DNA of 64,000 bases. Origin: Octopus bimaculoides (lineage: Eukaryota). Shown piece by piece: positions 13,381-34,426 of this stretch. The translations under genes were made by a program, and so were the position numbers. Where the stretch lies: contig NC_068981.1 in assembly GCF_001194135.2 (NCBI RefSeq), forward strand, positions 20,469,580-20,533,579, written 5' to 3'. Below the pieces are notes generated by a model, which saw nothing but the letters and a program-made list of their open reading frames with translations, was not told where the DNA came from and did no database searches. Positions within the stretch are counted from its first letter, which is position 1, and every line of letters begins with the position of its first letter.

Positions 13381-14475
13381 TCCGTGCAGGAAAAGAAGGT
13401 CACCGTTGATGTCCCAGCCCTTTTTTTCCAGCTCATCTCATCCCCACGCGCTCCCCTGATTTCAAAGATCACCTCTTCATTTTACTCCATGTCAAAATCT
13501 GCCATCCACTTGGGTGGACACCTCACACGCCGTGATCTCTGTAGGGAGGGAGCCTCATTCTCTTTCTCTCCCCTACTGTCATCAGATGAAAGCAACAATT
13601 CTTATTTCTTTACTGCCCACAAGGGGCTACACACAGAGGGGACAAACAAGGACAGACAAACGGATTAAGTTGATTATATCAACCCCCAGTGTGTAACTGG
13701 TACTTATTTAATCGACCCCGAAAGGATGAAAGGCAAAGTCGACTTCGGTGGAATTTGAACTCAACGTAGCGGCAGACAAAATACCGCTAAGCATTTCGCC
13801 CGGCGTGCTAACGTTTCTGCCAGCTCACCAAAAGCAACAATTCTGTGAACATCCAAGTCATAACGTGACATTCCATCTACAGAAACGTTATTTTGGAATT
13901 AACAGTCATCACTGTTCCTCTGTTCCACTGAGACGGGCAGTGTGCCTTCGGGAGCTTGACCCAGACTTCACCTCCCACTTCCATGATGATAGGCCCTCTC
14001 TCTTCCACAGAGCATTTGGATAGTTTACTCAGATGCCACCATTCATATCTGAATAGCACTGTGTAGCACGGACTCTTTGACATGTCCTGGTCGGGGTAAC
14101 ATATTGCACCAGAATACTGCTTCCATCAGTGAGATGTTCCCCCTCTCCATCATGGCCTTGATCGTTCGATGATGTCTTTCCACGATCCCATTTCCATTCG
14201 GCCTGTATGCTGCTCTGAAGAAGTGGTGCATGTTCCCCTTATCAAGCATCTCCTTCAGTATCTCTGAATAAAATGCAGTGCCGTTGTCCATCAGCAATTC
14301 GTCCACAGGTCCCCACTCCAGGAATATCTCTTTCAGAACATGTGCAATCTTGTCTGCAGAGCCCGTCTTCATTTCCCTCCAAATGGCCACCTGACTTGGC
14401 CCACAGTCGACCATGAAGAGATACGCCCCCCCCCCCTTGCCGCTAATGTGCCACATCCACCACCAATTGTCTCCA
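13381..14475 (-). mobile_element. Gypsy LTR-retrotransposon relic: integrase core, C-terminus, PPT and start of 3' LTR
   Basis: ORF 14456-14043 has rve motifs (FMVDC...LLMDNGTAF...AAYRPNGNGIVERHHRTIK). Then EVWVK...QWNRGTV and LQRSRRVRCPPKWMADFDME* (stop near 13484), a purine tract TCAGGGGAG, and LTR-like sequence from ~13450. Interrupted by a SINE. Confidence 0.85.
13603..13830 (-). mobile_element. SINE (family C) nested in the Gypsy relic
   Basis: Head GAGCTGGCAGAAACGTTAGCACGCCGGGCGAAATGCTTAGCGG on the minus strand. Perfect 14-bp TSD AAAGCAACAATTCT (13589-13602 and 13831-13844). Confidence 0.9.
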
Positions 14476-15281: not shown

Positions 15282-16398
15282 ATGGCAGTTTATTTCATTT
15301 TGACTTATTGTGCTGTTTGGAGTATAATACTAAGTGAAACTGCATGCTGGGGATTACAGTCAAGAAATGGATCTAAACAGATAAAAGAGAAGCCCTCAAA
15401 TGTTAAGCATGCAGGTGAGGAATCTTTCCATATGTCTTCTGTCTACTGTCAAACAATATTAAAGAAATGTCTGTATAACAATGGTGAGAGAGAGCTTATA
15501 TATGTGGTGCAATTTGGGTATTCTTTACAATCCCTATACAGTCATGTGCTGTACAATCACACAACACAATATAATGGTGACGTTGTGAATGTAGAACAAG
15601 CAAGGAAAGAGGAAAAACAATTTTAGATTTAAGAAAAAAAAAAAACCAAGAGATTCAGAATTAAGTTTAAGCTATCTTGAGAGAGAATCTGAGAATATTT
15701 TCAAACAGATGGAAGTCATCATACTTGAATGTCCTGGTAGATCAAAACTGTTAAATTCTATGTTTGCATTTGGGATTGAAAAAATAGAGAAGCTTAGAGT
15801 GTTGTTGATAGGAGTTTCTGATGGTCTAATATTTAATTCAAAATTAAGACAGAAGCTAGCTATATGAGTATTTTTTAAATATTACCAATTAGCAGGTTAA
15901 AATTGAATTACTAATTAATAAGGAGGGGCTCCCTATAGATTATATACAAAGGGGTGCTGAAATGTTCCTGGCTTTGAGTAAAAGAAGAGACAGGAGGATT
16001 AGTTATGATTTTATTCAACATATTCCCCTCACAGATTCACACACATATTGCAGTAATCCTTCAGTTTTTCTACGCCATGTAAAAGAACTCGGAAGTTTAG
16101 GCCTCCAATGAGGCCTTTCACAATACCCTTAAAGCCAGGAATTTTACAGCACCCCCTTGTATATCATCATCGTCATTGCTTTTATGTCCACTTTTTCATG
16201 CTTACAAAGGTCAAACAGAATTTGTTGAGGTAAATTTTCTACAGCCCAGTATCCTTCCTTTTGTCAACCATAAGCTGTTTCCAAGCAAAACAATATTTTG
16301 CCATGACAAGACATGTTTTCATGGAAGACTAGAAATTAAGGACTCTGCTTATATGATTGTGATTCTCGTTTACAATTATTGCATAATGTTAAGAAGTA

Positions 16399-16435
<37 letters not shown>

Positions 16436-17472
16436 GCACGCACATAATCTATGCCACATTCCCACTAAAAACTTCACACTAAACATTAAACCCTTCACCC
16501 ATTCCTTTCTCCCTAAACTGAAACTGTCCAGAACTCTTTCCCCACAGAACTTCCTCACATCAATCTTACCAATTTAGGAAGACTTACAAAAATCATATAC
16601 ACTGCTCTAAGTCATCTATTATTTTTTTTTTTAATCCAACTTCTACTTCTATTGTTCCAGGAAAAGCCAACTCAAGAACCCGCTCCACAGCTGTTGAGTT
16701 GCCTAATTCAATCCGTGAATTGATCCTTCATTCTTTAGCTGTGACAATAAACAATGCAAAAGTGAATGAAAGCCAGGCTGCATTACTGCGTTGTAACAAC
16801 AAGATAAGCAAACTTATTTTGAAGAGATTCCCTGATGCTAAGTTCCTGTGGCTACATAATAACAAACATTTACGATTTAATGGTTTTAAATACAGACTGA
16901 AGAATGGGGACTTACTAATAAAACATTTCAAATCTTTAGCTGATAGTGGAGTGTATACCTGCCAAATGGTTTACAAACAAAAATGGAAGGTCACTCTAAC
17001 GATTTATTCACTGACAGTGGCAGCTTCATCTCCCAAAGACTTTCCACAACTGCACTTTACTTCTGGATCTACAGTTAAAATTGATTGTAACAGTGATATA
17101 CTTGGGGATTTGTACACTGGATCAACAAAACAGTGGACTATAAATGGGAAAGTTTTGAAACATGTTGCTAAAACTCGTGCCAATCATGACATATTAGATA
17201 CTGTATCTTCTGTTAGTGAAAACCAGTCTGGAATATGGATCTGTATGGTCCTGAGAAGAGATGATCCAAGAAAATTTTGGATTACTAATAAACTAAATGT
17301 AGTTATTGATCCTCCAAAAACCTTTTGGCAAGCAGTGATGAAATCTCGTTATTTTCCACTTTCCCTGACAAACATTATAGGAGTAATTTTCACTTTCCTG
17401 ACTTTAGTACTTTGTTTAGTTATAATTTCTGTGAATCGTTTTATTATAGCAAAAAACAAAAATAAAATCTAG
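15282..17472 (+). CDS. Gene B: signal peptide + two Ig-like domains + TM + 12-aa tail (~314 aa)
   Basis: Exon 1 15282-15414 (MAVYFILTYCAVWSIILSETACWG...; donor CAG|GTGAGG, phase 1) joins in frame to exon 2 16661-17472 (acceptor TTCTATTGTTCCAG|). Ig1: LLRC...FLWLHN...DSGVYTC. Ig2: VKIDC...KQWTIN...SGIWIC. TM: LTNIIGVIFTFLTLVLCLVIISV. AATAAA at 17560-17565. An alternative donor ACA|GTAAGT just upstream of the ATG could mark a different first exon. Confidence 0.88.
15947..16159. mobile_element. Tc1/mariner-type MITE in the gene B intron
   Basis: ~29-bp imperfect TIRs CAAAGGGGTGCTGAAATGTTCCTGGCTTT / AAAGCCAGGAATTTTACAGCACCCCCTTG with TA on both sides. Confidence 0.8.
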
Positions 17473-18759
17473 ATTCTTGGTTTTTTTAAAACCTTTCTCT
17501 CCCAAACAACTATTTTAATTGAAACTCCGGTGACTCCTTGTTCTTAAGATTCACAATGAAATAAAAGTCTAAAATATACATTTAGAAATTTTTGATAAGA
17601 AAATATAACAAAAGGAAAAGGAGTTAATTTTTATTAAAAATATGGTATTTATTTAATCTAAAATAATTGTTAATTTCACAAAGTTTTATTCAACATTGAT
17701 TTGGTCTGGCAATGTTGGCTAGCTATCATTGTCCGGAAATTTTGACTGGATAGACACAGAATTTAGTTGGTATGTTGTCTGCTATCTATACATAACAGTG
17801 GAGTCATCACTGCATCTTAACAACTTGCCTACTTCTGAAACTATAGCAAATTCCAAGAGTCAGAGTTTTTGAAATTTCAAGAGTCAAACTGGTCTGGGTT
17901 TTATAAAACTAAATTAACCAAGTGAGTCATTTATTGTTCCTTTTATAGCTCATTCACCTTCCTCTTCTCCCTCTTCCAGCCCTCTACTTCATGTACCTAC
18001 ACCTAACTGGATTCCTCTATGTGTCTCATGTTTAATAATATGTCACATTTTTAATGGTGTATCAAATCTACAAAGGAAGTACCGCATGCCTAATGTTGTA
18101 TTTCTTGTTAAATGCACATAGCTATATGAGGGTTGTTGATAAAGAGACTGAATAGGTGCAACATTAGTGAGAGGATGTTAGGAGAAGAGGTGAAAGGAAA
18201 TCTAATCCAAAGAGTGACTGAGGAGAAGGAGAGAGAGAGAGAGATGAGCAGTTATCTGATGGTTGTTGGTAAGGGTATGGAATAGAAACAACATGAGCAA
18301 GATATATTTTTAGTGTGAATATTAAATGTTTATCCCTGTTTTCTATGCACATTCAAAACAAGTGTTTCAGAATCTCCAAAGGTGGTGTGAAACAAGGAAG
18401 AAAAAAAAATGATAGGGAGAGGGAGAAGGAAGAGAAAGGGAGGGAGACAGAAAGAGATAGAGAGAGAAAGACAAAGAGAGGGTGAAAGCAAGAGCAATAG
18501 ATGAGTGTGAAAGATGTCAATGAGAAAGGAGAAAGGAATGTGAAAGAGAAAATAATAGCAGAGAAACAAGGTGATGGAAAAAAAGTGTAAGAAGTAAAAG
18601 AAAGGGGAGTGGGTGAGACAGAGAGTCAGAGAGTAATGGATGTCTGTGAAAAGTGATAGAGACATAATATGAGAGAGAGAGGAAGTCATGGAAAACAATA
18701 AAGATAAGGACTAAAGGAGAGAAGGAGTGATGGATATTTCAGTTTGTAAGCTATTTTTC

Positions 18760-19310
18760 ATGCCACCTCCCCTATTGAGGTTGTCATGCATGGTGGTCAT
18801 CCCCTAGCATGATGGGGATAAGTGGGATTAAACTATAGGAAGTGGGGTCCAGAACAGGTTCTTGTATAATAGATCAGCATGCCTACTCACATTTAGTAGG
18901 AGAAGGGGAGGAAGAGGAAAGAGAAAATAATCAGTAGGATCTGCAAAGAGATAGACAATGGCCATAAGGTGCCCAGGTGACTCCCCAAGACATAAGGTAT
19001 ATAGATGTGGGTGAGTGGATAATATGCAAGATTGTATGGAAAGGAAATGAGGGGATGAGAAGGTAGACTCAGAAAATTGGCAGGGTTGAAGTGACATGGT
19101 TGGGTTGTCTGCAGTAGCTGGGAAAAGGAACTAGAGACAGGTGTAGTGCAGGTGGAAAGTCATTGTAATGTGGGTGGAGAACACAATACATAGCACTTCC
19201 AGAACTCAGTTTCACTGAGTAGTAGAAGAGTTTTAAGGACTTGCATATCACTAGAGCTCCTGATTCTTTGTCATCTCTGCCACCAGGCTCAGAGTCAGCC
19301 TTCACCACTT
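18760..19310 (-). mobile_element. Heavily decayed Penelope-like GIY-YIG fragment
   Basis: Broken minus-strand frame LQPCQF...IQSCILSTHPHLYTLCLGE loosely matches the PLE motif 'FPC..C..IYCI.C..C..LYIGET'. A long GA-rich tract precedes it (18180-18720). Confidence 0.35.
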
Positions 19311-19334
19311 CATGCTATGTCTTCCGGAGTTATG

Positions 19335-19371
<37 letters not shown>

Positions 19372-19381
19372 NNNNNNNNNN

Positions 19382-20503
19382 TTTTTGTCCATTCTTCAGC
19401 TAAAACAGTCTCCAGTTCTTGTAGTGATGATGGTGGAGGATATCGACTCCTTACTTGTTTTTCCCAAATACACCATAAATATTCAACAATATTGAGATCT
19501 GGAGACTGTGGTGGCCAGAAAAGATGTTCAACTTCACTAGAATGCTCCTCGTGTCATTCAGTAACAACTTTAGCTGCGTGAATTGGTGCATTATCATCCT
19601 GAAAGATTGCGTTTCCCTCCAGAAACACTTCTGTAACCATAGGATGAATTTGATCAGATAAAATGCTTAAATAGTCTTGGCTATTAATTCTGCCATAAAG
19701 GGAAACCATTGGGCTGGTGGATTTCCAAGATATAGCTCCCCAGATCATCACAGATCTTCCTCCATGTTTAGCAGTTGGAAGAAGGCAGTCTGAGTCAAAT
19801 ACTTCTTTTGGCTGTCTCCACACGTATACTCAGCCAGTGGTCGGAAATAAGGTAAAGGATGACTTGTCCAAGAAAATAACATTCTTCCACTGCTCTAGGG
19901 ACCAATTCTGTAGGTTTTTACTCCACTCTAAAAGCTTTGAAATGTTTGTTTTTGAAAAGTAGTGGTCTTCTGATTGTAGCCCTCACATTAAATCCAGCTT
20001 TGTGCAGCTCCCAGCGAACAGTTTTTGTGGAAACTGGGTTCTCGAAGTGGTCATTAAGCTCTGCCGTAATTTTGGGAGCTGTACTATTGTGAACCTTTCT
20101 AACAATTCGTGTAAGAGTCTGATGGTCCCTATCTGAAAGTTTTGGTTTTCTTCCGTAATTTTGTTTCAACAAGGAGGTTTTTCCCTCTTTCTCAAAGGCT
20201 GTCATTACTTTCGAGACAGTACTTCTTGATACACCAAACATTTTGGCTGTTTTTGTTATGCTAGCACCTGTCATATGAGCACCAACAATTTGACCTTTTT
20301 GAAAGTCCGATAGATCTGTCATTTTAATGAATTTTAATTACCTTTTGCTGATGATATCTGAAAACAAACATCAATTTTAGCAAAACATATTAAGCAATAC
20401 TAATAATAAATCAAAAAACATAAAAATAAACAAACTTTTGATGGTTTTATAGATATTTCAAAATTATGATGCTAGATGTTTCCATTATTTTGTTCAACTC
20501 CTG
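19382..20503 (-). mobile_element. Defective Tc1/mariner transposon with DD36E triad spacing
   Basis: Paired HTH N-terminus (MTDLSDFQKGQIVGA...GRKPKLSDRD), then IFLDKS / FQDDNAPIH / WPPQSPDLNIVE. One frameshift and in-frame stops. 5' TIR CAGGAGTTGAACAAAATAATGGAAACA at 20503-20477. The other end is lost in the gap at 19372-19381. Confidence 0.92.
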
Positions 20504-20505
20504 TG

Positions 20506-20630
20506 TATATAGTAGAAGACACTTGCCCAAGTTGCCACAAAGTGGGATTGAACTCGGAACCATGTGGTTGATAAGCAAGCTACTTAACACACAGCCACTC
20601 CTGCACCTATAGGGTCTAAATATTTTATAA
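20506..20630 (-). mobile_element. 5' half of a family-B SINE, split by the Tc1 insertion at a TA
   Basis: TATAGTAGAAGACACTTGCCCAAG...AACCATGTGGTT...CACACAGCCACTCCTGCACCTAT directly abuts the Tc1 TIR. Confidence 0.7.
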
Positions 20631-20715
20631 GGAAAATAAGTATAATAAAATTATTAATAATAAAACGGTTAGAATTGGTTTTTCAGTATCTAAAAACTTA
20701 TTTAGAATTATCTCT

Positions 20716-21190
20716 TTGACTAATAACAATAAATTATACATTTTTTATAGTAATAGACATAACAATACTTTAATTATTAACACTAATAATGGACCTAATC
20801 AAAATCATGTAGCTAGAATTTGTGATTGTAGGTTTAAAGATAAATGTTATTTCAATAATTTTTGTATCCAAAGTAACCTTATATACAGATGTAGGGTAGA
20901 ACTGAAGGAAATAATTCTTTTTATATTAGGGGAACCGAAAATTTTATTAAACGATGTATTGCAAACTGAATATACTTTTAGAAACAGAAATAAGTTGTGT
21001 AGCACCAGTTTAAGTGAAATTATATGGAAGTTAAAGGATAATAATAAATTATATAACCTTAAATCACAAATACTTAGTCATACTAAATCTTATGAAATTT
21101 CTGATTGATAACAGATGTAACTTGTGTGAGGAGGAAATATACCAAATTTGAACATCAAAAATGAAACTTCTTAATGACAGACAAGACAGA
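20716..21190 (+). mobile_element. Penelope-like element GIY-YIG endonuclease relic
   Basis: RICDCRFKDKCYFNNFCIQSNLIYRCRV...TFRNRNKLCSTSLSEIIWKLKDNN...QILSHTKSY..*NRCNLCEEE matches the PLE EN pattern 'CNC...CPL.G.C...VVY...STELSK.IW.LK...C.LC'. Confidence 0.85.
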
Positions 21191-21320
21191 CACTCTTCAA
21201 AATATATGTTTAGAAAATATAATTAAGTTCAATTGATTATTTGAAGGATTATTGGATATTAAAGTATAAACTAACTATTTTAGATAATTAAATATTATAT
21301 CATTATATAATCTTTAGAAA

Positions 21321-21352
<32 letters not shown>

Positions 21353-21418
21353 CTGTATATATGTAGATATATGCAAATATATGTATATGTATATATCTAG
21401 CTTTATATTTGTAATTCA

Positions 21419-21570
21419 TATCATCATCATCATCATCATCGTTTAACGTCCGCTTTCCATGCTAGCATGGGTTGGACGATTTGACTGAGGACTGGTGAAA
21501 CCGGATGGCAACACCAGGCTCCAGTCTGATTTGGCAGAGTTTCTACAGCTGGATGCCCTTCCTAACGCCA
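21419..21570 (-). mobile_element. 3' end of RTE-related element with (GAT)n tail (family A)
   Basis: (CAT)n-CGTTTAACGTCCGCTTTCCATGCTAGCATGGGTTGGACG...GGATGCCCTTCCTAACGCCAA. Confidence 0.85.
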
Positions 21571-21886
21571 ATATATACACACACATATTTATTAGTGTAT
21601 TTGTATGTATGTATACTATTATTATTATTATTTAGTAAATTAATTAGAATCATTTATCTATAATCAATATTTTATTAAGTAATATAATACTAAGGTTTTA
21701 TTAATCTAAAAGTATATTGTCAGTAGATTATCTTATAATAATGTCTACTTAAATTCCATTATATTATAATGTAATTCTATATTAGATATAATCATTTTAA
21801 ATAGGTTTTAAATTTGTAATAATTATAATTTTAATTCATCATCACTATCATCACCATTGTTAAACATCCACTTTCCATGCTAGCAT

Positions 21887-21942
<56 letters not shown>

Positions 21943-22539
21943 GTAGATAGATAGATACTGGTGTCATTCAAATGGCATTCATGCCAGTAACATGTAAAAA
22001 CAACCATTACCCTCTCAGAGTGGTTAGTGTTAGGAAGAGCATCCAGTTGTAGAAGACATTCCAAGTCGGTCTGGATCCTGGCACAGCCTTCCAGGATGCC
22101 AGGCCAGTCAAACCATCCAACCCATGGGACAATAGACGTTAAATGATGATGATGCTAATCTAATATAATGAATGTAAATGTCAGTGTGTCACATTTTTTC
22201 AACTTTACTCCTACATGCGCTGGCCTAACATATCTTACCATTTTGGAATCAGGCTGACACCATGAGTAAATTAAAAACATTCTGGGCCGAATCCAGACAC
22301 TCAATCCTGAAATTTTGGATTCCCAAAATTTCATTATGAGCGTACAAAAAGTAAAGAAAAATTAGGGAGAGATAACTAATAAAAGAAGCGAAGGGAAGTA
22401 AGTCAACTTACTTTACCAAAATGAGTTTACATCACACCAAAATTAGTTTAGTTTGGAATTGGAAATCGATTGAAATGTCACATGGAAGACCAGTGGCACT
22501 GCAGTTTATTATACTTGAGTGGAAATCCTCAATCATGAA

Positions 22540-22985
22540 ACAATGTTATAAGAATCATGGAGTATTACTAAATTTGCAGAATCAGGCAACAACATCCTTC
22601 AATGGTTGGCACGGCACCGTTTAATTATGAACAAGTACACCTGTGAATATTGCAATTCACCATGTGACCTCATCACATGTGGTGACATTATTGATGGAAA
22701 CGTTTGGTACTGCAAGCTTTGTAAATTGTGAAAATCAATCCATCACAGGTCATACTTTGACAAAATTCATGTGCCCCTGTATAACAGCCTTTTAATCATT
22801 TATTGTTGATCATGCAATATGTCGCAAAATGATATGATGCATGAATCTTCTATACAAAGTAGAACTATGATTGTCGATTGGAGTAATTTCTATGGAGCAA
22901 TATGTGATGCTTAATTGAAAAAAATTCAATGCAAATCGGTGGCATCGATGCTAATGGGCAACCAGTCATTGTGGAGATAGTTCAA
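22540..22985 (+). mobile_element. Merlin (IS1016/IS1595-like) DNA transposase relic
   Basis: Frame not in the ORF track because of stops: NILQWLARHRLIMNKYTCEYCNSPCDL...DGNVWYCKLCKL*KSIHHRSYF...MIVDWSNFYGAIC, then after a frameshift QIGGIDANGQPVIVEI. This is the Merlin pattern 'C..C...DG..W.C..C...SIR..S.F...TIVDW.NF...IGG.....VEIDE'. Confidence 0.8.
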
Positions 22986-23221
22986 AAGACTTCAGTTTCC
23001 AGTGTGAGTGAGCTATGCACTGTCAATCAATAGGTCCCAAGTACAATCACCTTATCATGTGGCTTTTAAGCTGGTATATATATATATATTTATATGTAAT
23101 CTTAGTATATGTATATATTTACATTGANNNNNNNNNNNNNNNNNNNNNNNNNNNNNNNNNNNNNNNNNNNNNNNNNNNNNNNNNNNNNNNNNNNNNNNNN
23201 NNATATATATGCAAAACATTA

Positions 23222-23481
23222 TATCATCATCATCATCATTGTTTAACATCCGCTTTCCATATTAGCATGGGTTGGACGATTTGACTGAGGACTGGTGAAC
23301 CAGATGGCTGCACCAGGCTCCAATCTGATCTGGCTGAGTTTCTACAACTGGATGCCCTTCCTAACGCCAACCATTCCGAGAGTGTAGCAGGTGCTTTTAC
23401 ATGCCACCGGCACGAGGGCCAGTCAAGCAGTACTGGCAACAGCCATGCTCAAAATGGTGTTTTTTATGTGCCACCTGCACA
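23222..23481 (-). mobile_element. 5'-truncated family-A (RTE-tail) element
   Basis: Same (CAT)n tail and body as 21419. Flanked by a 53-bp direct repeat (23075-23127 and 23484-23536). Confidence 0.85.
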
Positions 23482-23974
23482 GATATATATATATATATTT
23501 ATATGTAATCTTAGTATATGTATATATTTACATTGATATCTGTATATATGCATCTGTTAACTCATTTTTGTTAATTATTTATAATTTTTTTTATATATTT
23601 GGGCAAATGAATACTGATATGTACTATGTATTGTTACGTGCACATACGTATATATATATATATATATATATATGTATGCATTTATCTATGTCTATACGTG
23701 CATAGGTGTGTATATATGTGCATATGTATCTATGTATGTGTGTGTTATAAGCATTACAATATGTTATATTCTTCTAATAAACTATATAATCTTAGTATAG
23801 GATAAGAATAATTATGATAATGATATTGAAGTCCTTAGGAAGTTGAAAAGTGATGTTATTTTATATCGAATGATCTTAAATGTAATTACATTCATTTTAA
23901 TTAAATGTTAAAGTAGACCCTACTCTAAATATATGTTTCTAACATTATATTATTCCTTCATAAGTATGAATGCA

Positions 23975-24372
23975 TGCACAAGAGTGGCTGTGTGGTAAGT
24001 AGCTTGCTTACCAACCACATGGTTTCGCGTTCAGTCCCACTGCATGGTGCCTTGGGCAAGTGTCTTCTACTATAGCCTCGGGCCGACCGAAGCCTTGTGA
24101 GTGGATTTGGTAGATAGAAACTGAAAGAAGCCCATTGTATAGATGTATATGTATATATGTGTGTGTCTGTGTTTGCCCCCCCCCCCTCAACATCGCTTGA
24201 CAACCGATGCTAGTGTGTTTATGTCCCCGTAACCTAGCAATTCGGCAAAAGAGACCGATAGAATAAGTACTAGGCTTACAAAGAATAAGTCCTGGGGTCG
24301 ATTTCCTCGACTAAAGGCGGTGCTCCAGCATGGCCACAGTCAAATGACTGAAACAAGTAAAAGAATAAAGAG
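23975..24372 (+). mobile_element. Full-length tRNA-derived SINE (family B)
   Basis: Head GAGTGGCTGTGTGGTAAGTAGCTTGCTTACCAACCACATGGTT..GTTCAGTCCC, internal (TA/TG)n, A-rich tail. Cephalopod tRNA-derived SINE families are known; the exact family is not assigned. Confidence 0.85.
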
Positions 24373-25142
24373 TATATTTATTTAAAATGAAATATTTCCC
24401 CTGAAAAATAAGAAATTTTTATTTATTTATGTAAAAATTAGTATAGATAAAAATTATTCTAGCATAAATATTTATTGTACACCATATTAAAAACATACTT
24501 TGTAAATTACCTTTGTGCAATTATGTCCCTTCTATTCTGCTGTAAATATAAATGCATATAAACATTATGATGAGATTTTCTCCTCTAAAAACTATGTAAT
24601 TTTAATTTCAATTTTAATTTTAGCAGTATTCTTTTTAGTATGGAAATGAGTAATTATCAAAAGGACATTTATGAAGTCCTTATGATTATTATTTTTTTTT
24701 TTTTTTTGATAACTGGTTAATTCAGCATTTATTTAATTTCTGTAATAATTATGTTACTATTTCGTATGTGTATTTCGTGTACAAGATTCTTGATGTGGAT
24801 ACGTGTGTTGAAAGAAATACAATTAAACCTTGCAATCTCTTCAGTAACTTGTCTCTCGAAGAGATTGCAAGAGTGCAATGAAATAATTTAACAAAAAACT
24901 ATATAAATTAATAAAGGACTGAAGCAGTGTGTGTGTTTATTACCGGCATAATGCCTCTCCCAAGGTTTAATTGTATGTTACTATGATAATATTTTTTAGA
25001 AAGTTTCTTCCTTATATAAACTATGTAATTTTTAATTATTAATCTTTCATATTTAGTAACGATTATTATAAATAATTAATGCAATGTAATTTATATTTGC
25101 TTTTTGATTAGAGATGGTAAAATAATTTGAATATTTTGAATA

Positions 25143-25298
25143 GGTGCAGGCATGGTTGTGTGGTAAGATGCTTACTTCCCAATCACATGGTTCCAGGTTC
25201 AGTTCTACTGCGTGGTACCTTGGCCAAGTGTCTTCTGCTATAGCCTCAGGCTAACCAAAGCATTGTGAGTGGCTTTGGTAGATGGAAACTGAAAGAAG

Positions 25299-25355
<57 letters not shown>

Positions 25356-25570
25356 CTGTGTCTGTCCCTCCACCATCGTTTGAAAACTGATGTTGGTGTC
25401 TTTACATCTGTGTAACATAGTGGTTCAGCAAAAGAGACTGACAGAGTAAGTACTAGGCGTACAAAGAATAAGTCCTGGGATCAATTTGTTTGAATAAAGG
25501 TGGTGCTCCAGCATGACTGCAGTCAAATGACTCAAACAAGAAAAAGAATTGAAGAAAAAAAGAAAAGAAT
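25143..25570 (+). mobile_element. Second, more diverged family-B SINE
   Basis: Colinear with 23975-24372. Confidence 0.8.
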
Positions 25571-26527
25571 ATTATTTTACTATTTACCCATAGATAGATA
25601 GTGTATTGTAATTATAATAACATGTATTTTTTAATAATATGAAAGAATGAAAGGGATATTTCTTATTTCGCCATGGGTTTTTTTTTTAACATTTTTTTTT
25701 TATATTCTTTTAAATATTGCACTTCGTATTTTTTTTTAAATCAATGTGCTAAAATATATTTAGATTAAAATACTTAATAGTATACAAATATATTCTATGG
25801 CTGTTATATTACTTTGTTTTTCATATTTTATTTTTGATCTTTGTTTTTGTTTTTAACTATTGATGCTCGTGCTTGAAAACATGAATATATTTAAATTCGG
25901 TCTTTTCTTGGATCTGTGAATCCTCATATATCAAAAATTACACTGTAGAGATTCTTACTCACACACAATGGATTTTTATAATTTTATTATGGATAAGAAT
26001 CAGCACAATTGTATGTGATTTGTATTTAATATTTATTATATTATATTATAAGAATATAATATAATATTATGTTAATAAATTTTAATTTTTGAATTGATAA
26101 TTGTATATCTCCATTTTCTTTCCATTTTTATAAATTTAATATACAACCATGTGAATTGTAAAGTTTTTCTTTATTAAATTGGGTATTAAATGGTTGAGCC
26201 AGTGAAAGATTAGATCTTTTCATCCCTATTTTCCTCGTATTTAAAATATGTGTGTGTATGTTGTGTGTGTGCATGTCTGTATCTCTTTTATATGTATGTA
26301 TGTGTGTGTGTATTCGTGGATGTTTGTGTGTATATATCTAGGTATATGTCTATATAACTCTATATCTATACATATGACNNNNNNNNNNNNNNNNNNNNNN
26401 NNNNNNNNNNNNNNNNNNNNNNNNNNNNNNNNNNNNNNNNNNNNNNNNNNNNNNNNNNNNNNNNNNNNNNNNNNNNNNNNNNNNNNNNNNNNNNNNNNNN
26501 NNNNNNNNNNNNNNNNNNNNNNNNNNN

Positions 26528-26818
26528 GCCAGTACCGCCTGACTGGCTCCCGTAGGATTTTCGAGCGAGATCGTTGCCAGTGTCCCTAGACTGGCTTGTG
26601 CAGGTGGCACATAAAAGACACCATTTCGAGCGTGGCCGTTTTCGTGCGGGTGACACGTAAAAGCACCCACTACACTCTCTGAGTGGTTGGCGTTAGGAAG
26701 GGCATCCAGCTGTAGAAACTCTGCCAAATTAGATTGGAGCCTGGTGTTGCCATCCGGTTTCACCAGCCCTCAGTCAAATCGTCCAACCCATGCTAGCATG
26801 GAAAGCGGACGTTAAACA

Positions 26819-26849
<31 letters not shown>

Positions 26850-26850
26850 C
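26528..26850 (+). mobile_element. Family-A (RTE-tail) element
   Basis: GCCAGT...GGTGGCAC subrepeats, GGTTGGCGTTAGGAAGGGCATCCAGC core, (GAT)n tail. Confidence 0.85.
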
Positions 26851-27288
26851 TAGGTGTGTGTCAGTCTTATGGCCATCAGTCTTTTGTCCCTGCCAAGGTT
26901 GGGGGTTTTATGTTTGTTGCTCTATGTTATATATATCATCACCCTTTCTTTCATTCCCCTCCCTAATATCTTTTATCAGCACATACACACACACACACAC
27001 ACACACGCACACACACACACACACACGCACACACACACACACAAGTTGGTCACCACTTGTCTTTTTTTTAATCTTTTTTATCTTAAAAAGTCTTAATGAC
27101 CTTAAATGCTGTGGTTTTATTCCTTCCTACTCCCCCACACACACACATCCTTCCTCCTCCTTTCACTAAATTTGTATGTCAATATGTATATGTATGTGTG
27201 TAGTTTATGTCTGTGTGTGTGCGTGTGTCTCTGTCTGTGTATATGTATCTATGTGCATTCCTATGTTTGTGTATCTGTTTATTATTTG

Positions 27289-27360
<72 letters not shown>

Positions 27361-27439
27361 TTTATTTATATATGTATGTGTGTGTGTTTATATATATAGA
27401 TATGTGTGTGTGTGTATATATATGAAGCACAACTTTCGA

Positions 27440-28246
27440 ACATTGGTCCTTACCAAGGCAATGACTAGTGAACAAGACCTTTGGAGATATGCTGTGCTTC
27501 AGAAGGCCTGACAAGCCAAGTAAGACCATGGCCCATGGCCTATGCTAGTGGGTGTAACCAACCCACTTAGGAATACTCCTCATTCATTGGACAATAAACT
27601 TTGCTTGCAAAGACTTATTGAGGCAAGTGAAATCAAAATCAAAATCACTGATGTGGCCGATGACAGTACCACCTGATTGGCACTCATGCCAGTGGAATGT
27701 TAAGAGTACATCTGAACGTAGGTTGTAACCAGCCCACTTATGAGTACTCCTCATTCATTGAACAATGAACTTTGTTTGCAAAGACCTATTGAGGCAAGTG
27801 AAATCAAAATCAAAATTGCTGACGTGACTGATGACAGTACCGCCTGGTTGGCACTTGTACCAGTAGAACGTTACAAGCACATTTGAGCGTGATCATTGCC
27901 ATGACCACGGATATGCTCCCGTACTGGTGGCACATGAAATGCACCATTCGAGTGTAATCGTTGCCAGTGTTGCCTTACCTGCACATGTGCAGGTGGCATG
28001 TGAAAAACAACATTCAACTGTGGTCATTACCAGTTCTGCCGGACTGGCCCCCATGCCAGTGTCACGTAAAAGCATCCACTACACTCTCGGAGTGGTTGGC
28101 ATTAGGAAGGGCATCCAGCTACAGAAACTTTGCAAGATCAGATTGAGCCTGGTGCAGGCTCTGACTCACCAGTCTTCAGTCAAACCGTCCAACCCATGAC
28201 AGCATGGAAAGTGGACGTTAAACGATGATGATGGTGATGATGATGA

Positions 28247-28250
<4 letters not shown>
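27440..28250 (+). mobile_element. Longer family-A element (RTE LINE 3' end and 3' UTR with internal tandem subrepeats)
   Basis: Begins with an RTE C-terminus-like frame (KAMTSEQDLWRYAVLQK). ~180-bp internal duplication (27545 vs 27726). (GAT)n tail. Confidence 0.8.
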
Positions 28251-28281
<31 letters not shown>

Positions 28282-28857
28282 TAAAAATGTAGAGACTCTC
28301 AACACGACCGATCTTTATTCCATTTATTTAATTATTTACCATTCGATGTCAATATGCTATATTGGTAACGATTACAAAATTTACTGGAAAATTATATATA
28401 TATATATATACATATAATTAATATAGACAGCAGTCTGCAATGTTTTACCAGAAAAGTAAAACTGTAACTGTCAGTAGATTGCTAGAAATAAGAGCTATAT
28501 ATATATATATAACAACAGATGGATAATGGTTCATTCACTACAGCTGTTTCCAACGAATTTTTTAATTGATGAACAGAGATATTACATCATATGGAAAAAG
28601 TTTTCATCAAGTGAATATATATGAATTACACATTTAAAATGTACTCTATTGACTTTCTCATTGGTAATACCTTTCCCTATATATTATGCACAAAGTAATT
28701 ATTTTCCCAAATAAATTACACTTCATATTTGAGGCTCTGATGAAACTATAAGGTGTTATTCAGACATTCAACTATGAGTCCACTGCATTTTATAGCAGAA
28801 ACAACTGTAAGCTAATGAAGTTCATAACATATTCGTTTTTTCCTATGTCATCTCATT

Positions 28858-28892
<35 letters not shown>

Positions 28893-28897
<5 letters not shown>

Positions 28898-29090
28898 GTA
28901 AAAATATGTGACACTTATTCGGTAGCCATGATAAAACTCCGAGTTTCAGATGCCGGGGTGGGAGCCCACCCCAACATCTTTTCAGTTGTTGACCATTGAA
29001 AATTCCTGTTGGCGTGGGCTCCCACCCCGGCATCCAAAACTCGGAGTTTTATCATGGCTACCGAATAAGTGTCACATATTTTTACAGATA
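28893..29090. mobile_element. ~200-bp foldback MITE with ~77-bp TIRs at the edge of a (TA)n tract
   Basis: TATCTGTAAAAATATGTGACACTTATTCGGTAGCC...GGGAGCCCAC (28893-28969) is the reverse complement of 29014-29090 with 2 mismatches. TA at both ends. Confidence 0.9.
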
Positions 29091-29379
29091 AATTCCTCTA
29101 TTTACATAATATTGAGGTCTCTTTCTTTCTTTTGTTGTCCTTCCTATTAATATATATATATATATATATATATGAGAGGTATTGGTATCCAGAAGACCCA
29201 AGGTGGCAGGTAACACTATGTAAGTGCTATGGGAGGACCATAGTTAAACTCTTGGTTTGATAGTGATACAAGTGAGGAGTCTAATGCAGGTCTTGTATGA
29301 GCATGTATATGTTAAATAAAATGAGACAACAAAGCCAAGGCTGTGTGGAATTTGTAGGACATTTATAAAGGGAAAGGTA

Positions 29380-29427
29380 GTCTTACAGATGTTTCCGGGA
29401 TATTAGGGATATCCCTTCGTCAGAGAC
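29380..29427 (-). ncRNA. Minimal type-I hammerhead ribozyme motif in a Penelope-like terminal repeat (slightly decayed)
   Basis: Minus strand reads GUCU-CUGACGA-A-GGGAUAU-CCCUA-AUAUCCC-G-GAAA-CAUCUG-UA-AGAC: stem I 4 bp, core CUGANGA, stem II 7 bp, GAAA, near-palindromic stem III (CAGCUG expected), GUA cleavage triplet. Confidence 0.7.
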
Positions 29428-31096
29428 GATGTGAGATGGTTAAATAGAGGGAAATATTAGAGTTCAATATAGGAGTTATTTTGGAAAAGGAAACAAATAG
29501 GGAGTGTATAGGGAAATAGGAGAATGAATGTAGAAATAAAAATGTATAAAGATGTTATATATATTATGTTGTGTCTTATTTCAGTAGCAGCTTACCTACC
29601 TTAGCAGTAGCGGGAATAACAGTAATACCTCTGGAATGAGGGGCATTAACATCTGTAGCCACAATGATGCAAATGCAACACATCTTCCTTTTCTTTGGTT
29701 CTTATACTACTTGAGATGATTTAAATCCTCACTCAAATTCAATTGATCATACTACTTTTATATTATCTAGCAATACCTCTAAGGTTGTGGATTCTAATAC
29801 TGATCTTCAAAGCACTGTTATTCTTCATCTCAATTGCTTTAGCCCTGGAATGAATACTATCTAAAACAACCATTATTGATTAGGTTTATATGTATGTATG
29901 TGTGTGTGTATTCGTGGATGTTTGTGTGTATATATCTAGGTATATGTCTATATAACTCTATATCTATACATATGACTACTGACCGAGACCTTTGGAAATG
30001 TGCTGTGCGTGAGAAGACCCGGCAAGCCAAGTAAGATCGCCTAACTTCCCTTTGACCATCAAATAGTAGAGATACTAACACCTCTATTCCTGCTCCTGGG
30101 ATAAACCATTGTCTTGACCAATATAGGACACAAATAGAGCAAAAGCGCACTCATAGTGGGAATATCTGTAATTATCTCTCAACTCTGTCCATTAAATGGG
30201 TTTTGCTTGTCCTGTAATATGATATATAAATGTTTTGTCACAACTCCATCTTTTCACCAAACTAAGATCTACACAGGGGAAACAATTGACTTAAAGTGAT
30301 ACTATGTTACTCACCTCATCTCCTTCTCAAATAGGATCTTTAAACAATCTATTTCCCTAGCCATCTACATGCATCACCTCAAGTCCCAGAGTATGCCTTA
30401 TACTTTATCATGATTTATAGTTTATGGTGGAACCCCATACACTGCTAACCTTCATGTTTGTAAATTATGTTACTGAGAATCACTCACAATATTATGCCAA
30501 AATCTGACATCTTTATTTAATTAATTTTCTGATGTAATCTTCTCTTCCAGGTACAAATTCTATAACACCTTTGCTCATTATGAACAATTATAATTTCTCC
30601 ATGTCCTTTGTCTTAGCTAAAATGCTATTTTTCATTAACATTTTTTTTTCCTACTACTCCCACTCCCTTACCTCAATGCTTAATTTTCTCGTGCCTCTGT
30701 GTCCATTACCTCTGATGTTCTTAACTGCTTTATTGTCTGAGAACAACTTTGAGCCCCTGTTAGGTTAAGTGACTACACTTTCTTTTGGTCAGCTATTAAC
30801 TATGTCTTCTTTATATCTGGTCTTTGTCAGGTTGTATCTTCATCCTGTCTTGCCTCTTAACTACCTCAACTCTCCCATTATTTCAATCTACTTCCCCCAG
30901 TCATATTCCTTTCTCTTCTCCTTAAGCATTTATATTTGTAAACACTACTAGATAGCTTGCATTTACCGCTCTACTCTTGAAAGGGGTGGTACTTTAACAA
31001 TTTCATCTAGTCTTCTCACTGGAAACACACCTATGACATCATGCACATATATATTAATATAGTTATTATGTACATTAAAGACTCTTGGCTGTTGAG

Positions 31097-32098
31097 ATAA
31101 GACATTACATAAATTTCTTTTACCTTTGTATATATTTTTCTTTTCTGCATTTTGTACTCCATGTAAATATATGTCTCAAACCTGTGTTTATCTACTCTAC
31201 TGCCTCTATATTGATAAGTTATTTTACTACACCTGTTTTCAGATACCATTAATAGAAGCCATTTTGATCATTCTCCCAAAGAACAGATAAATTTTAACAA
31301 AAATATCACAGAACTCAAACCTTTAATGAAAAGACAGAAACGCCATGGTGAAACATTATTTCCTTTACCACCTAGATTGGTTTTGCTGGCAGTGGTCTAT
31401 CTCAAACAGGTTTTCCATCAAATCAATATTAGTGCTTATCATAGTGTAACCCTGTCTTGTGATAATGTTATATCCAGAGCTATCTATGATGAATTCCCAA
31501 TGGCCATCCTGTTCTGGGAATTTAATGACCAACCTTTTAATATTGATCCATCTTCCATGCTTTATAAATCCATATCTAATGAATTGGTCCTCATCTCAGC
31601 ACAACCAAAGAACAGTGGTGTTTATACATGTCAAATGACACAGAATTTCCAGTGGGTTCAAGTGGTGGATGTGTTTGTCCTACAGGTATATTCAGAAGAA
31701 GTAAAAACATATTACAAAGAGAAAACCAAACTGCGTTTGAGCTGCCATGGTGAGGCACTAATGGAAATATTTCCTGGTGTGAAAAGGATATGGTATCGTA
31801 ATAATACTGCGGTATATATTAATGATAATGTTCAATCAGATGTTGTTGATATCCCTTCAGAAAAGGTGAGATACTAATTTTTAATAGGGTTTAACCTCAT
31901 AGCCTCATAGCAAATAACCACCACTGTCATCAGTGATTTCATCATCATCCTAATCATTATCATTTTCTTGATCATCATCACTAACATCTTCAGGTATGCA
32001 TTTCTGTGTATTATATTTGTGTCTATTTTATGTTAACAAGTGTATGCATGTAAGGGCACCTGTGTATGTAAGTGCATGTGTATGCATGTGAAGTGCAC

Positions 32099-32189
<91 letters not shown>

Positions 32190-32494
32190 CTTGTGTATGT
32201 GTCTGTGTAGATGGAATTGTTGCTTCCTCACAATGCTCTTCTTACCATTAATATAGTTTGTACTTCATGTTTCAGTTACATGACTATGATCAATGGCAAT
32301 GTTGTATTGTTCAAGGTCACAGACACTGGATTACAGCAAACTATACACTTTTATTGATGCCATCCATCCCATTTACAATGTCTACAGTCTCCCTAGTAGC
32401 TCTACTACTCTCGTCTGCCATTCTAGTGGCTTTCATCACTTTAACTGTCTGCTTCAGTGTTCGCAAGAGAAAAAAAACTGAAATAAAAGATTGA
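31097..32494 (+). CDS. Gene C: paralogue of gene B, two Ig-like domains + TM + 10-aa basic tail
   Basis: Exon 31243-31865 (acceptor CTGTTTTCAG|, donor AAG|GTGAGA, phase 1->0) has RQKR, Ig1 VTLSC...LFWEFN...NSGVYTC and the first half of Ig2 LRLSC...RIWYRN. Exon 32276-32494 (acceptor TGTTTCAG|, phase 0) has QWQCC...HWIT, TM VSLVALLLSSAILVAFITLTVCFSV and tail RKRKKTEIKD*. A candidate signal-peptide exon ~31097-31162 (KFLLPLYIFFFSAFCTP, phase-1 donor T|GTAAAT) is less certain; the start codon was not located. Confidence 0.85.
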
Positions 32495-33225: not shown

Positions 33226-34426
33226 AGCAGGGTGCAGGTGGGTCAACAGTTACCAGTTATATATTGTAGTGATATCAGTTGTGCATAGTCAAAAGAACAG
33301 TTAGACCAAACATGACAAGCTCACTACACTGGAACTCCACTTTAGGCAAAACTGATTGAAGTAACTGAACTTTCCCCTGAGAAAAGAACAGCCATGTATG
33401 GTAGTGCTTGCATTTGGAAACTCATATTTATGAGGCTGCATACAGTGATTCAGGCTGCTCCAAACAGCAGTCAAATCTCCCTCTAATTTCCCCCTACCGT
33501 TTTAATAAAGATATGTTGGATAATATAGTTCTAATCAAAGCATGACTGAAAAAAAGAAGGATGGACATGGTTAGAACATCTTTGATCATAGGTCTACTAC
33601 AACCACAAGAAGAATAACAACAACTCTCTACACCCAAATATATTTTAATATACAATGTCATAAAATAATTTTCACACATATATTATTATTATGAAGCCAA
33701 AGATACACCTTAAGGAAATATTTGGATACACTACCAAGTCCCATAATCACTTGATGAGTTAACTCTCTTTTCAAACATACTCTAGTATCTTGTCACAAAC
33801 ACTGAGTACAGAATAGTAAATCTTGTCTATTCTCCTGAAAATATCTAAGTACAGCCAATTCAGTTTTGGCTCTGTTTTTGTTTAACTGAAGTGAAATGCT
33901 TGCAAAAGAGACATACATCTATTACAACTCTTTGGTATATTTCCCTGACAATTAACTTTAATATATATTGAAAACATTCTTATATCAAAGATTCTCATTC
34001 ATATTTATCTTTCAAGAATAGAACCAGTGTGAAATTTTGTAAGATTGCAAGCCTTAACTAACATATATAAATTCTTGATTCCAAACCTGAAAGATTTTCT
34101 TTTAAGGATATTTCAAAAGGATATTTCAAAGATAACAGTAGTAAGATATTAAGATAAATTAATATCACAAAGCTTTATTTAATTCATTTTCTCAAATGCA
34201 TAATAAAAAAAAATGAAAAATAAAAGTAACTGTTTACATCAAAATGCATTTTATTTTTTTTATTTTAATCTTGAAGCGAAAATAGTTTTTAAATCATTAC
34301 AAAATTTACTCTATACATTTAATTAACAAAAAATAGTTATGAAGTGAAATTTTCAGTGGAATAATGTTAAGAGTAAACAATATTTTATTAAGAAAAAAAT
34401 TTTTAAACAATTTCTTTGATTTTTAC

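Follow-up and report, generated by a model that had tools for sequence, protein, structure and literature searches.

The window analysed here is a stretch of 64,000 nucleotides of the Octopus bimaculoides genome (RefSeq assembly GCF_001194135.2, contig NC_068981.1, positions 20,469,580 to 20,533,579, forward strand), an AT-rich and microsatellite-rich piece of animal DNA that contains the locus LOC106882169. The locus has a single leader exon and two downstream bodies, B and C, all on the plus strand, with body C lying about 14 kb further along than body B. Each body encodes two immunoglobulin (Ig) domains, a transmembrane (TM) helix and a short tail. The two bodies are probably alternative 3'-terminal parts of one transcription unit, in which the one leader exon is spliced to either of them in a mutually exclusive manner. 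The parts of the locus, in window coordinates, are as follows.

15282..15414, plus strand: shared leader exon (coding part), encoding the signal peptide MAVYFILTYCAVWSIILSETACWG and an N-terminal pro-region of about 20 amino acids (aa); donor CAG/GTGAGG, phase 1
16661..17472, plus strand: body B, a single exon; acceptor ttgttccag/G, phase 1; stop codon 17470-17472
16705-16743, plus strand: N-terminal helix of body B
16750-17022, plus strand: Ig1 of body B
17047-17310, plus strand: Ig2 of body B
17359-17433, plus strand: TM segment of body B, followed by the 12-aa tail NRFIIAKNKNKI
17560..17565, plus strand: AATAAA, candidate proximal poly(A) signal from a motif search (consensus match), 88 nt past the B stop
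17473..31242, plus strand: spacer, comprising the B 3' untranslated region and the remainder of the long intron of isoform C, with a Tc1/mariner remnant, microsatellites and three assembly gaps
31243..31865, plus strand: first exon of body C; acceptor ttttcag/AT, phase 1; donor AAG/GTGAGA, phase 0
31332..31343, plus strand: RQKR, a furin-type proprotein-convertase site at residues 75-78 of isoform X1, about 40 aa ahead of the B-strand Cys of Ig1
31866..32275, plus strand: intron of body C, phase 0, within Ig2, with splice consensus and (TA)n and (TG)n microsatellites
32276..32494, plus strand: last coding exon of body C, with Ig2 strands F and G (W.C...HWIT), the TM segment, the tail SVRKRKKTEIKD and the stop
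33504..33509, plus strand: first AATAAA past the C stop, candidate distal poly(A) signal from the motif search (consensus match), about 1 kb downstream

Spliced to body B, the leader exon gives a protein of 314 aa that matches XP_014788245.1 (RefSeq isoform X2) exactly. The coding sequence of C is 100% identical to XP_052821562.1 (isoform X1, also UniProt A0A0L8I8X7), and its first exon encodes a pro-region with an NIT sequon, the RQKR site, the N-terminal helix, Ig1 and strands A to E of Ig2. In a six-frame scan of the window with a family hidden Markov model (HMM), body B was matched at E 5e-76 and the two C exons at E 2e-52 (first) and 2e-11 (last). An in-frame TAA stands immediately 5' of the C acceptor in O. 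bimaculoides. Genes of the immunoglobulin superfamily (IgSF) typically have one Ig domain per exon and phase-1 introns. Body B carries both Ig domains, the TM segment and the tail on one exon, which is unusual among IgSF genes, and the sole intron of body C is in phase 0 and falls inside Ig2 rather than between the Ig domains. A second in-frame phase-1 donor (ATG/GTGAGA) follows position 15483; it would lengthen the leader exon by 23 codons (15415-15483) and is unused in the annotated isoforms.

The RefSeq models of LOC106882169 place the same exon before both bodies. Isoform X1 has 44 residues from the exon at 15282 and then runs straight into C, and X2 joins this exon to B. LOC118764145 of O. 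sinensis also has X1 and X2 isoforms with the identical arrangement and 44 N-terminal residues in common, and the shared-leader model is present in both the 2015 UniProt and the current RefSeq annotations. The B and C acceptors are both in phase 1, the phase of the leader donor. The leader exon is a single copy at 15282, with no second copy or paralogue found by tblastn in the window, and a scan of 17473-31242 for an ATG, a hydrophobic core and a phase-1 G/GTRAG donor gave no candidate for an alternative leader exon; the same scan does recover the true leader exon. No third body was found in the window by tblastn, by a motif regular expression or by the six-frame scan, leaving exactly two. The annotations in two species, the matching splice phases and the lack of a second leader exon in these searches thus argue for one transcription unit. 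The initial annotation had described a tandem pair of genes, which does not agree with annotations that splice a single leader to both bodies or with the finding of only one leader exon in the window. It had also assigned the open reading frame (ORF) at 15282 to B; this exon is indeed spliced to B in X2, but as the only leader in the window it is annotated as spliced to C too.

B and C could instead be independent tandem genes, with the leader of C hidden in a gap or of non-consensus form, and with the isoform that joins exon 1 to C being an artefact or a rare read-through product ("conjoined gene"). This is unlikely, although a number of observations weigh in its favour or otherwise against a single unit. 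The shared-leader models are all computational, and annotation of the O. sinensis gene could have drawn on the O. bimaculoides protein. In O. vulgaris the C model (CAI9715875.1, 281 aa) is without exon 1. The AATAAA right past the B stop is plausible as a poly(A) signal, so most transcripts might end there, and both poly(A) signals of the locus are candidates by consensus match. The divergence of B and C appears ancient (see below), as expected of separate genes. Within 10 kb on either side of the B-like gene of another species (L006), a reach too short to decide, there is no C-like body or recognisable leader exon. Furin cleavage, surface localisation and function, discussed below, are themselves predictions. 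Finally, the spacer holds three gaps of uncertain length, all between the B stop at 17472 and the C acceptor at 31243, which could conceal a leader exon specific to C.

19372-19381: assembly gap (N run), nominal size 10 nt
23128-23202: assembly gap (N run), nominal size 75 nt
26379-26527: assembly gap (N run), nominal size 149 nt

The surroundings of the gaps are non-coding DNA, in or beside TA/CA microsatellites and transposon debris. No B or C coding exon touches an N, and therefore frame continuity is not at issue. How B and C are ordered and spaced depends on scaffolding across the three gaps; the independent O. sinensis assembly has both bodies in one gene model, which supports their order. 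The spacer has no match to the family HMM. Two separate genes are hard to reconcile with a shared-exon model that recurs in two species and in annotations of different dates, with the lack of a leader candidate in 13.7 kb of read sequence and of an exon 1 paralogue elsewhere in the window, or with the matching splice phases and the nominally small size of gaps that lie within microsatellites.

A shared leader would also be dispensable if C were translated from its own ATG at 31326 via an internal promoter, with MKRQKRHGETLFPLPPRLVLLAVVYL serving as a signal peptide or a signal anchor. Both O. bimaculoides and O. sinensis have this ATG, which precedes a basic n-region and a 9-residue hydrophobic core (LVLLAVVYL), in principle a signal sequence of C's own, and this too counts against a single unit. 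An own start is nevertheless very unlikely. The Met codon encodes Arg in a third octopus species, and the hydrophobic stretch aligns with the conserved N-terminal helix, which is family-wide and packs against Ig1. From the C acceptor to 31326, 27 codons stay open in three species, with the NIT sequon kept. The change from Met to Arg and the open upstream codons together imply that C needs an upstream start. A start of C at ATG 31326 was rejected, and the C exon is taken to begin at 31243. The N-terminus of the family member P0003 (MCLSTLL...) was likewise considered and rejected as a C signal peptide; the DNA alignment traces it to a 1-nt indel within another species' polypyrimidine tract, at a point where the O. 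bimaculoides sequence reads TAA in frame.

B and C each have an N-terminal helix, two Ig domains, a TM helix and a basic tail of 12 aa. The two proteins align over the whole ectodomain, as had been noted from the sequence at the outset (BLASTP 21% identity over 261 columns, E 2e-16). Both score above the gathering cutoff of 27 bits for Pfam Ig_2 (B 34.9 bits, C 28.6 bits), which places them in the IgSF. An AlphaFold2 model of B, run on a 45-sequence family alignment, has a mean predicted local distance difference test score (pLDDT) of 87.4 and a predicted template modelling score (pTM) of 0.73, with pLDDT of 95-98 over the ectodomain; a run on a 6-sequence octopus-only alignment gave pLDDT 48 and was discarded. 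The model has an N-terminal helix at residues 60-72 (13 residues), which packs on Ig1 with pLDDT of about 96, followed by Ig1 (75-165), Ig2 (174-261) and the TM helix, the Ig domains being two beta-sandwiches. In Ig1 a helix is predicted at 92-100, between C89 on the B strand and W108 on the C strand, and in Ig2 another is predicted at 190-195, between C187 and W203. At the level of prediction, these helices bear out the helical insert between the B-strand Cys and the C-strand Trp that had been proposed for both domains.

The tails NRFIIAKNKNKI (B) and SVRKRKKTEIKD (C) have no Tyr and no PDZ-type C-terminus, and the lack of Tyr excludes immunoreceptor tyrosine-based inhibitory and activation motifs (ITIM and ITAM). 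Glu is absent from the TM segments LSLTNIIGVIFTFLTLVLCLVIISV (B) and MSTVSLVALLLSSAILVAFITLTVCF (C). The initial annotation was right on both counts, having described short basic tails free of ITIM, ITAM and PDZ motifs and TM segments lacking the glutamate of basigin. These features support the assignment of the B and C products as type-I IgSF membrane proteins with short tails devoid of signalling motifs.

Both bodies are also present in the third octopus species, which was sampled as Logan genomic contigs (L001-L005, from runs SRR11869384-94) with about 88-89% DNA identity to the window. The ratio of nonsynonymous to synonymous substitution rates (dN/dS) against this species comes to 0.49 in the C exon and 0.51 in B (contigs L001 and L005), and dN is below dS in each case (Fisher p = 0.023 for C, 0.042 for B and 0.002 combined). 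The exons have 3 (C) and 0 (B) indel columns, and the adjoining intron segments have 20 and 30. Differences in the C exon number 15, 12 and 20 at codon positions 1, 2 and 3, and the B protein is 94% identical to that of O. sinensis. By these comparisons, both bodies are functional coding sequence under purifying selection. The moderate constraint fits a fast-evolving surface protein, and a dN/dS of about 0.5 is elevated yet gives no evidence of positive selection. One of the bodies might in principle be a decaying duplicate, a pseudo-exon that is no longer functional, since a ratio near 0.5 is high for a conserved receptor and Ig2 of C alone gives 0.85, on few sites. This is extremely improbable given that the ORFs are intact in 3-4 species with all signature Cys, Trp and Gly residues kept, that the exons are nearly free of indels, and that dN remains significantly below dS.

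The RQKR site reported before Ig1 of C lies within the annotated coding exon and is kept in O. bimaculoides, O. sinensis and the third octopus species. Among the 32 family members with enough N-terminal sequence, 14 have an R-x-[KR]-R motif 36-76 residues before the Ig1 Cys, against a chance rate roughly estimated at 2% per sequence, and a furin-cleaved pro-region is therefore likely to be a common trait of the family. The motif is frequent and not universal. Octopus B has SRTRS in its place and the B-like protein P0010 keeps RWKR, so that octopus B, judged by these residues, has lost the furin-type site.

The family extends well beyond the cephalopods. An exhaustive profile search (HMMER) found 320 proteins at E <= 1e-3, many of them about 220-700 aa long and with one match running through both Ig domains, the stalk and the TM segment. 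Named members include proteins from gastropods (Gigantopelta, Haliotis, Physella, Batillaria), bivalves (Pinctada, Crassostrea, Ylistrum), an annelid (Paralvinella), insects (Popillia, Bacillus rossius, Rhynocoris) and spiders (Oedothorax, Stegodyphus). All are annotated as "uncharacterized" save for automatic names such as "CEACAM1-like" and "Thrombospondin type 1 domain". Across 86 sequences the Ig1 signature is C89..P102..W108xxN111..R121..D139xG141xY143xC145..V164, and that of Ig2 and the stalk is C187..L192..W203xxN206..G235xW237xC239..W251xT253..PP. B and C carry all of these residues save for two substitutions in B and three in C. By this signature, B and C belong to an uncharacterised protostome family defined by the N-terminal helix, two Ig domains and a TM segment. 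The unusual shared Ig signature on which the initial annotation was built is thus real, since it recurs in 86 sequences, but it is not specific to cephalopods, and the notion of a cephalopod family gives way to full-module relatives in gastropods, bivalves, an annelid, insects and spiders.

Family members differ mainly outside this module. Most relatives have long tails that are acidic or Lys-rich, and the tails are short in the octopus proteins and P0010. Pfam TSP_1 was found in 5 of 45 members, N-terminal to the module. Many relatives, including insect and spider proteins, have one to three thrombospondin type 1 (TSP1) repeats directly before the N-terminal helix; these include P0037, P0039, P0047, P0050, P0051, P0062, P0088, P0094, P0113 and P0123. 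Some insect members (P0121, P0057) have a further large N-terminal domain. We know of no described family with a TSP1-Ig-Ig-TM architecture. A word-indexed protein search that used the family alignment was dominated by generic Ig proteins, PTK7 and contactin among them, and contributed no further members; a literature search found nothing on LOC106882169 or on the family.

B and C each have closer relatives outside the octopus than they are to each other. B is 31% identical to a Pinctada protein (E 7e-31) and 37% to P0010, and C is 30% identical to a Physella protein (E 3.5e-27) and 38% to P0024, compared with 21% (E 1.6e-16) between B and C. A neighbour-joining tree, crude and without support values, separates the two. 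The position of the C intron inside Ig2 is common to P0003 and P0024, in which read-through occurs at the same point, and B has no intron there. The closer outside relatives, the tree and the C-type intron position therefore indicate that B and C are old paralogues and not a recent tandem copy.

The gastropod relatives nearest to C (P0018, P0025, P0030, P0031, P0036, P0102 and P0119) have models that start just before the N-terminal helix and lack a signal peptide, despite a large ectodomain and a TM segment. Annotation may have missed their leaders, which could lie at a distance or, as in Octopus, be shared. At the Physella locus (L007) there is no neighbouring family member and no obvious leader exon within 3 kb upstream.

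Foldseek searches with the B model gave contactin-1, IL1RAPL1, NEGR1, DCC and MuSK as best matches (E about 1e-10), with TM-scores of 0.2-0.27 and root-mean-square deviations of 10-17 Å over about 210 columns. A PDB profile search returned contactins, CEA, DCC, Robo, NCAM and similar proteins. At the level of the predicted model, these matches reflect a similarity general to tandem-Ig proteins, and none is a close neighbour of the two-domain module. The octopus proteins share the canonical Ig core Cys...Trp...D-x-G-x-Y-x-C with contactins, IgLON/NEGR1, Ig1-2 of MuSK, IL1RAPL1 and DCC. Unlike generic tandem I-set/C2 proteins, their family adds the N-terminal helix, a helix in each B-C loop, a conserved W-x-T on the G strand of Ig2, a PP stalk and a furin pro-region.

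The initial annotation had favoured a cephalopod-specific adhesion or recognition gene pair akin to IZUMO1, SPACA6, TMEM81 and SPE-45, possibly with a reproductive role. The short basic tails and Ig ectodomain, the elevated dN/dS of about 0.5 and weak, sub-threshold Pfam matches to Sp38 and Izumo-Ig agree with this view. Sp38 scores 19.2 bits against a cutoff of 23.1, and Izumo-Ig matches 2 of 45 members, with a best E of 6.5e-4; both lie beneath stronger generic Ig matches. The best 50 Foldseek and the best 60 PDB-profile matches include none of IZUMO1, SPACA6, TMEM81 and basigin; generic neural or immune tandem-Ig proteins score highest there. IZUMO1, SPACA6 and TMEM81 have a four-helix bundle, a hinge and a single Ig domain, whereas the octopus B model has one helix and two Ig domains. 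ZPBP/Sp38 is secreted and has no TM segment, and both octopus proteins have one. Basigin, embigin and neuroplastin have a conserved TM Glu that B and C lack. What likeness there is to the IZUMO1/SPACA6/TMEM81 and basigin/embigin/neuroplastin groups lies in being single-pass IgSF proteins, some of them with short tails. With a family that is protostome-wide, a reproductive pair of this kind is scarcely tenable, and the proposed kinship with IZUMO1, SPACA6, TMEM81 and basigin finds no counterpart in fold or in the best structural and profile matches.

The arrangement of one leader and two bodies has a molluscan parallel. In the FMRFamide gene of Lymnaea the signal-peptide exon E1 is spliced to E2 or to E3-5, and the transcripts share only this 5' exon and differ by cell; Haliotis is similar (PMC4208409). 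The octopus gene models likewise have one signal-peptide exon and alternative bodies that each have their own stop, and product cleavage at basic sites, which occurs in the FMRFamide precursors, is predicted for C. The FMRFamide products are neuropeptide precursors, whereas the octopus bodies, known from gene models, are full two-Ig ectodomains with their own TM segment and tail.

Two further systems may be compared with the octopus locus. CALCA (calcitonin/CGRP) has common signal and pro exons and alternative terminal exons that each have a poly(A) site; its products are distantly related, and a convertase removes the shared N-terminus. These are vertebrate peptide hormones for which the competition between splicing and polyadenylation is demonstrated; for the octopus IgSF membrane proteins such competition is presumed. 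In the clustered protocadherins and UGT1A the variable exons are numerous, lie 5' and have individual promoters, and they are joined to constant 3' exons that are shared. As in these clusters, one octopus locus would give alternative paralogous products from a variable and a shared unit, but it is their mirror image, since a shared 5' leader joins two alternative 3' bodies and only the leader is common.

If B and C form one transcription unit, transcription would start upstream of 15282, and the leader donor would pair either with the proximal acceptor at 16661, the transcript ending at the nearby poly(A) signal, or, after read-through, with the distal acceptor at 31243. The choice of body would then be a competition of the proximal 3' splice site and poly(A) site with read-through to the distal acceptor. 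The signal peptide would be removed from the product. In isoform C a furin-type convertase is expected to cut after R78, giving a mature protein that starts HGETLF.... Such a cut would remove all shared residues from C, and therefore mature C would have nothing in common with mature B, which would retain the shared N-terminal stretch of about 20 residues. Both proteins would sit in the membrane and act via their ectodomains, either in recognition or adhesion or as accessory subunits whose signalling depends on partners. Tails without signalling motifs make these roles the most likely ones. The surface recognition or adhesion role first proposed remains reasonable.

It is possible, and put forward tentatively, that the family in Octopus consists, as far as the search saw, of one locus, in which paralogues that split before cephalopods parted from gastropods and bivalves have one promoter and one signal-peptide exon, and in which the mutually exclusive choice of body gives cells wholly different mature surface proteins. 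Such a locus would amount to an identity switch in its simplest form, "one leader, alternative receptors", and a literature search found no description of this arrangement among IgSF membrane proteins. If two receptor bodies of ancient divergence do share one promoter and one signal peptide, this would bear on the fusion of tandem paralogues into one unit, on the choice between splicing and polyadenylation as a switch of surface identity, and on how annotators count such genes. Since several gastropod models closest to C also lack a signal peptide, the family more widely might have leader exons that are remote or shared. On present evidence no new fold or new mechanism is revealed, and the gene models are already in RefSeq as isoforms of an "uncharacterized protein". 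What the analysis does define is a protostome Ig family, unnamed and widespread, that can be recognised by its signature and has a pro-peptide and relatives bearing TSP1 repeats; a family-specific profile can be built from the alignment.

Pfam also identified three remnants of mobile elements in the window.

14043-14456, minus strand: retroelement integrase core (rve) remnant, just upstream of the leader exon
19554-20322, minus strand: Tc1/mariner transposase remnant (HTH_Tnp_Tc3_2, DDE_3), adjoining the first spacer gap
53377-53754, minus strand: pogo/Tigger-type DDE_1 remnant

A tandem array at 42037-42884 has a 96-bp (32-codon) unit in about 8 copies of 92-95% identity and is broken by a gap at 42583-42592. 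Both strands are open through it, in ORFs at 41715-43055 (plus) and 41741-43069 (minus). The minus-strand reading gives a 442-aa acidic repeat protein that is rich in N-x-T/S sequons and has no meaningful Pfam match. The array may belong to a mucin-like gene as an exon, or it may be no more than a minisatellite.

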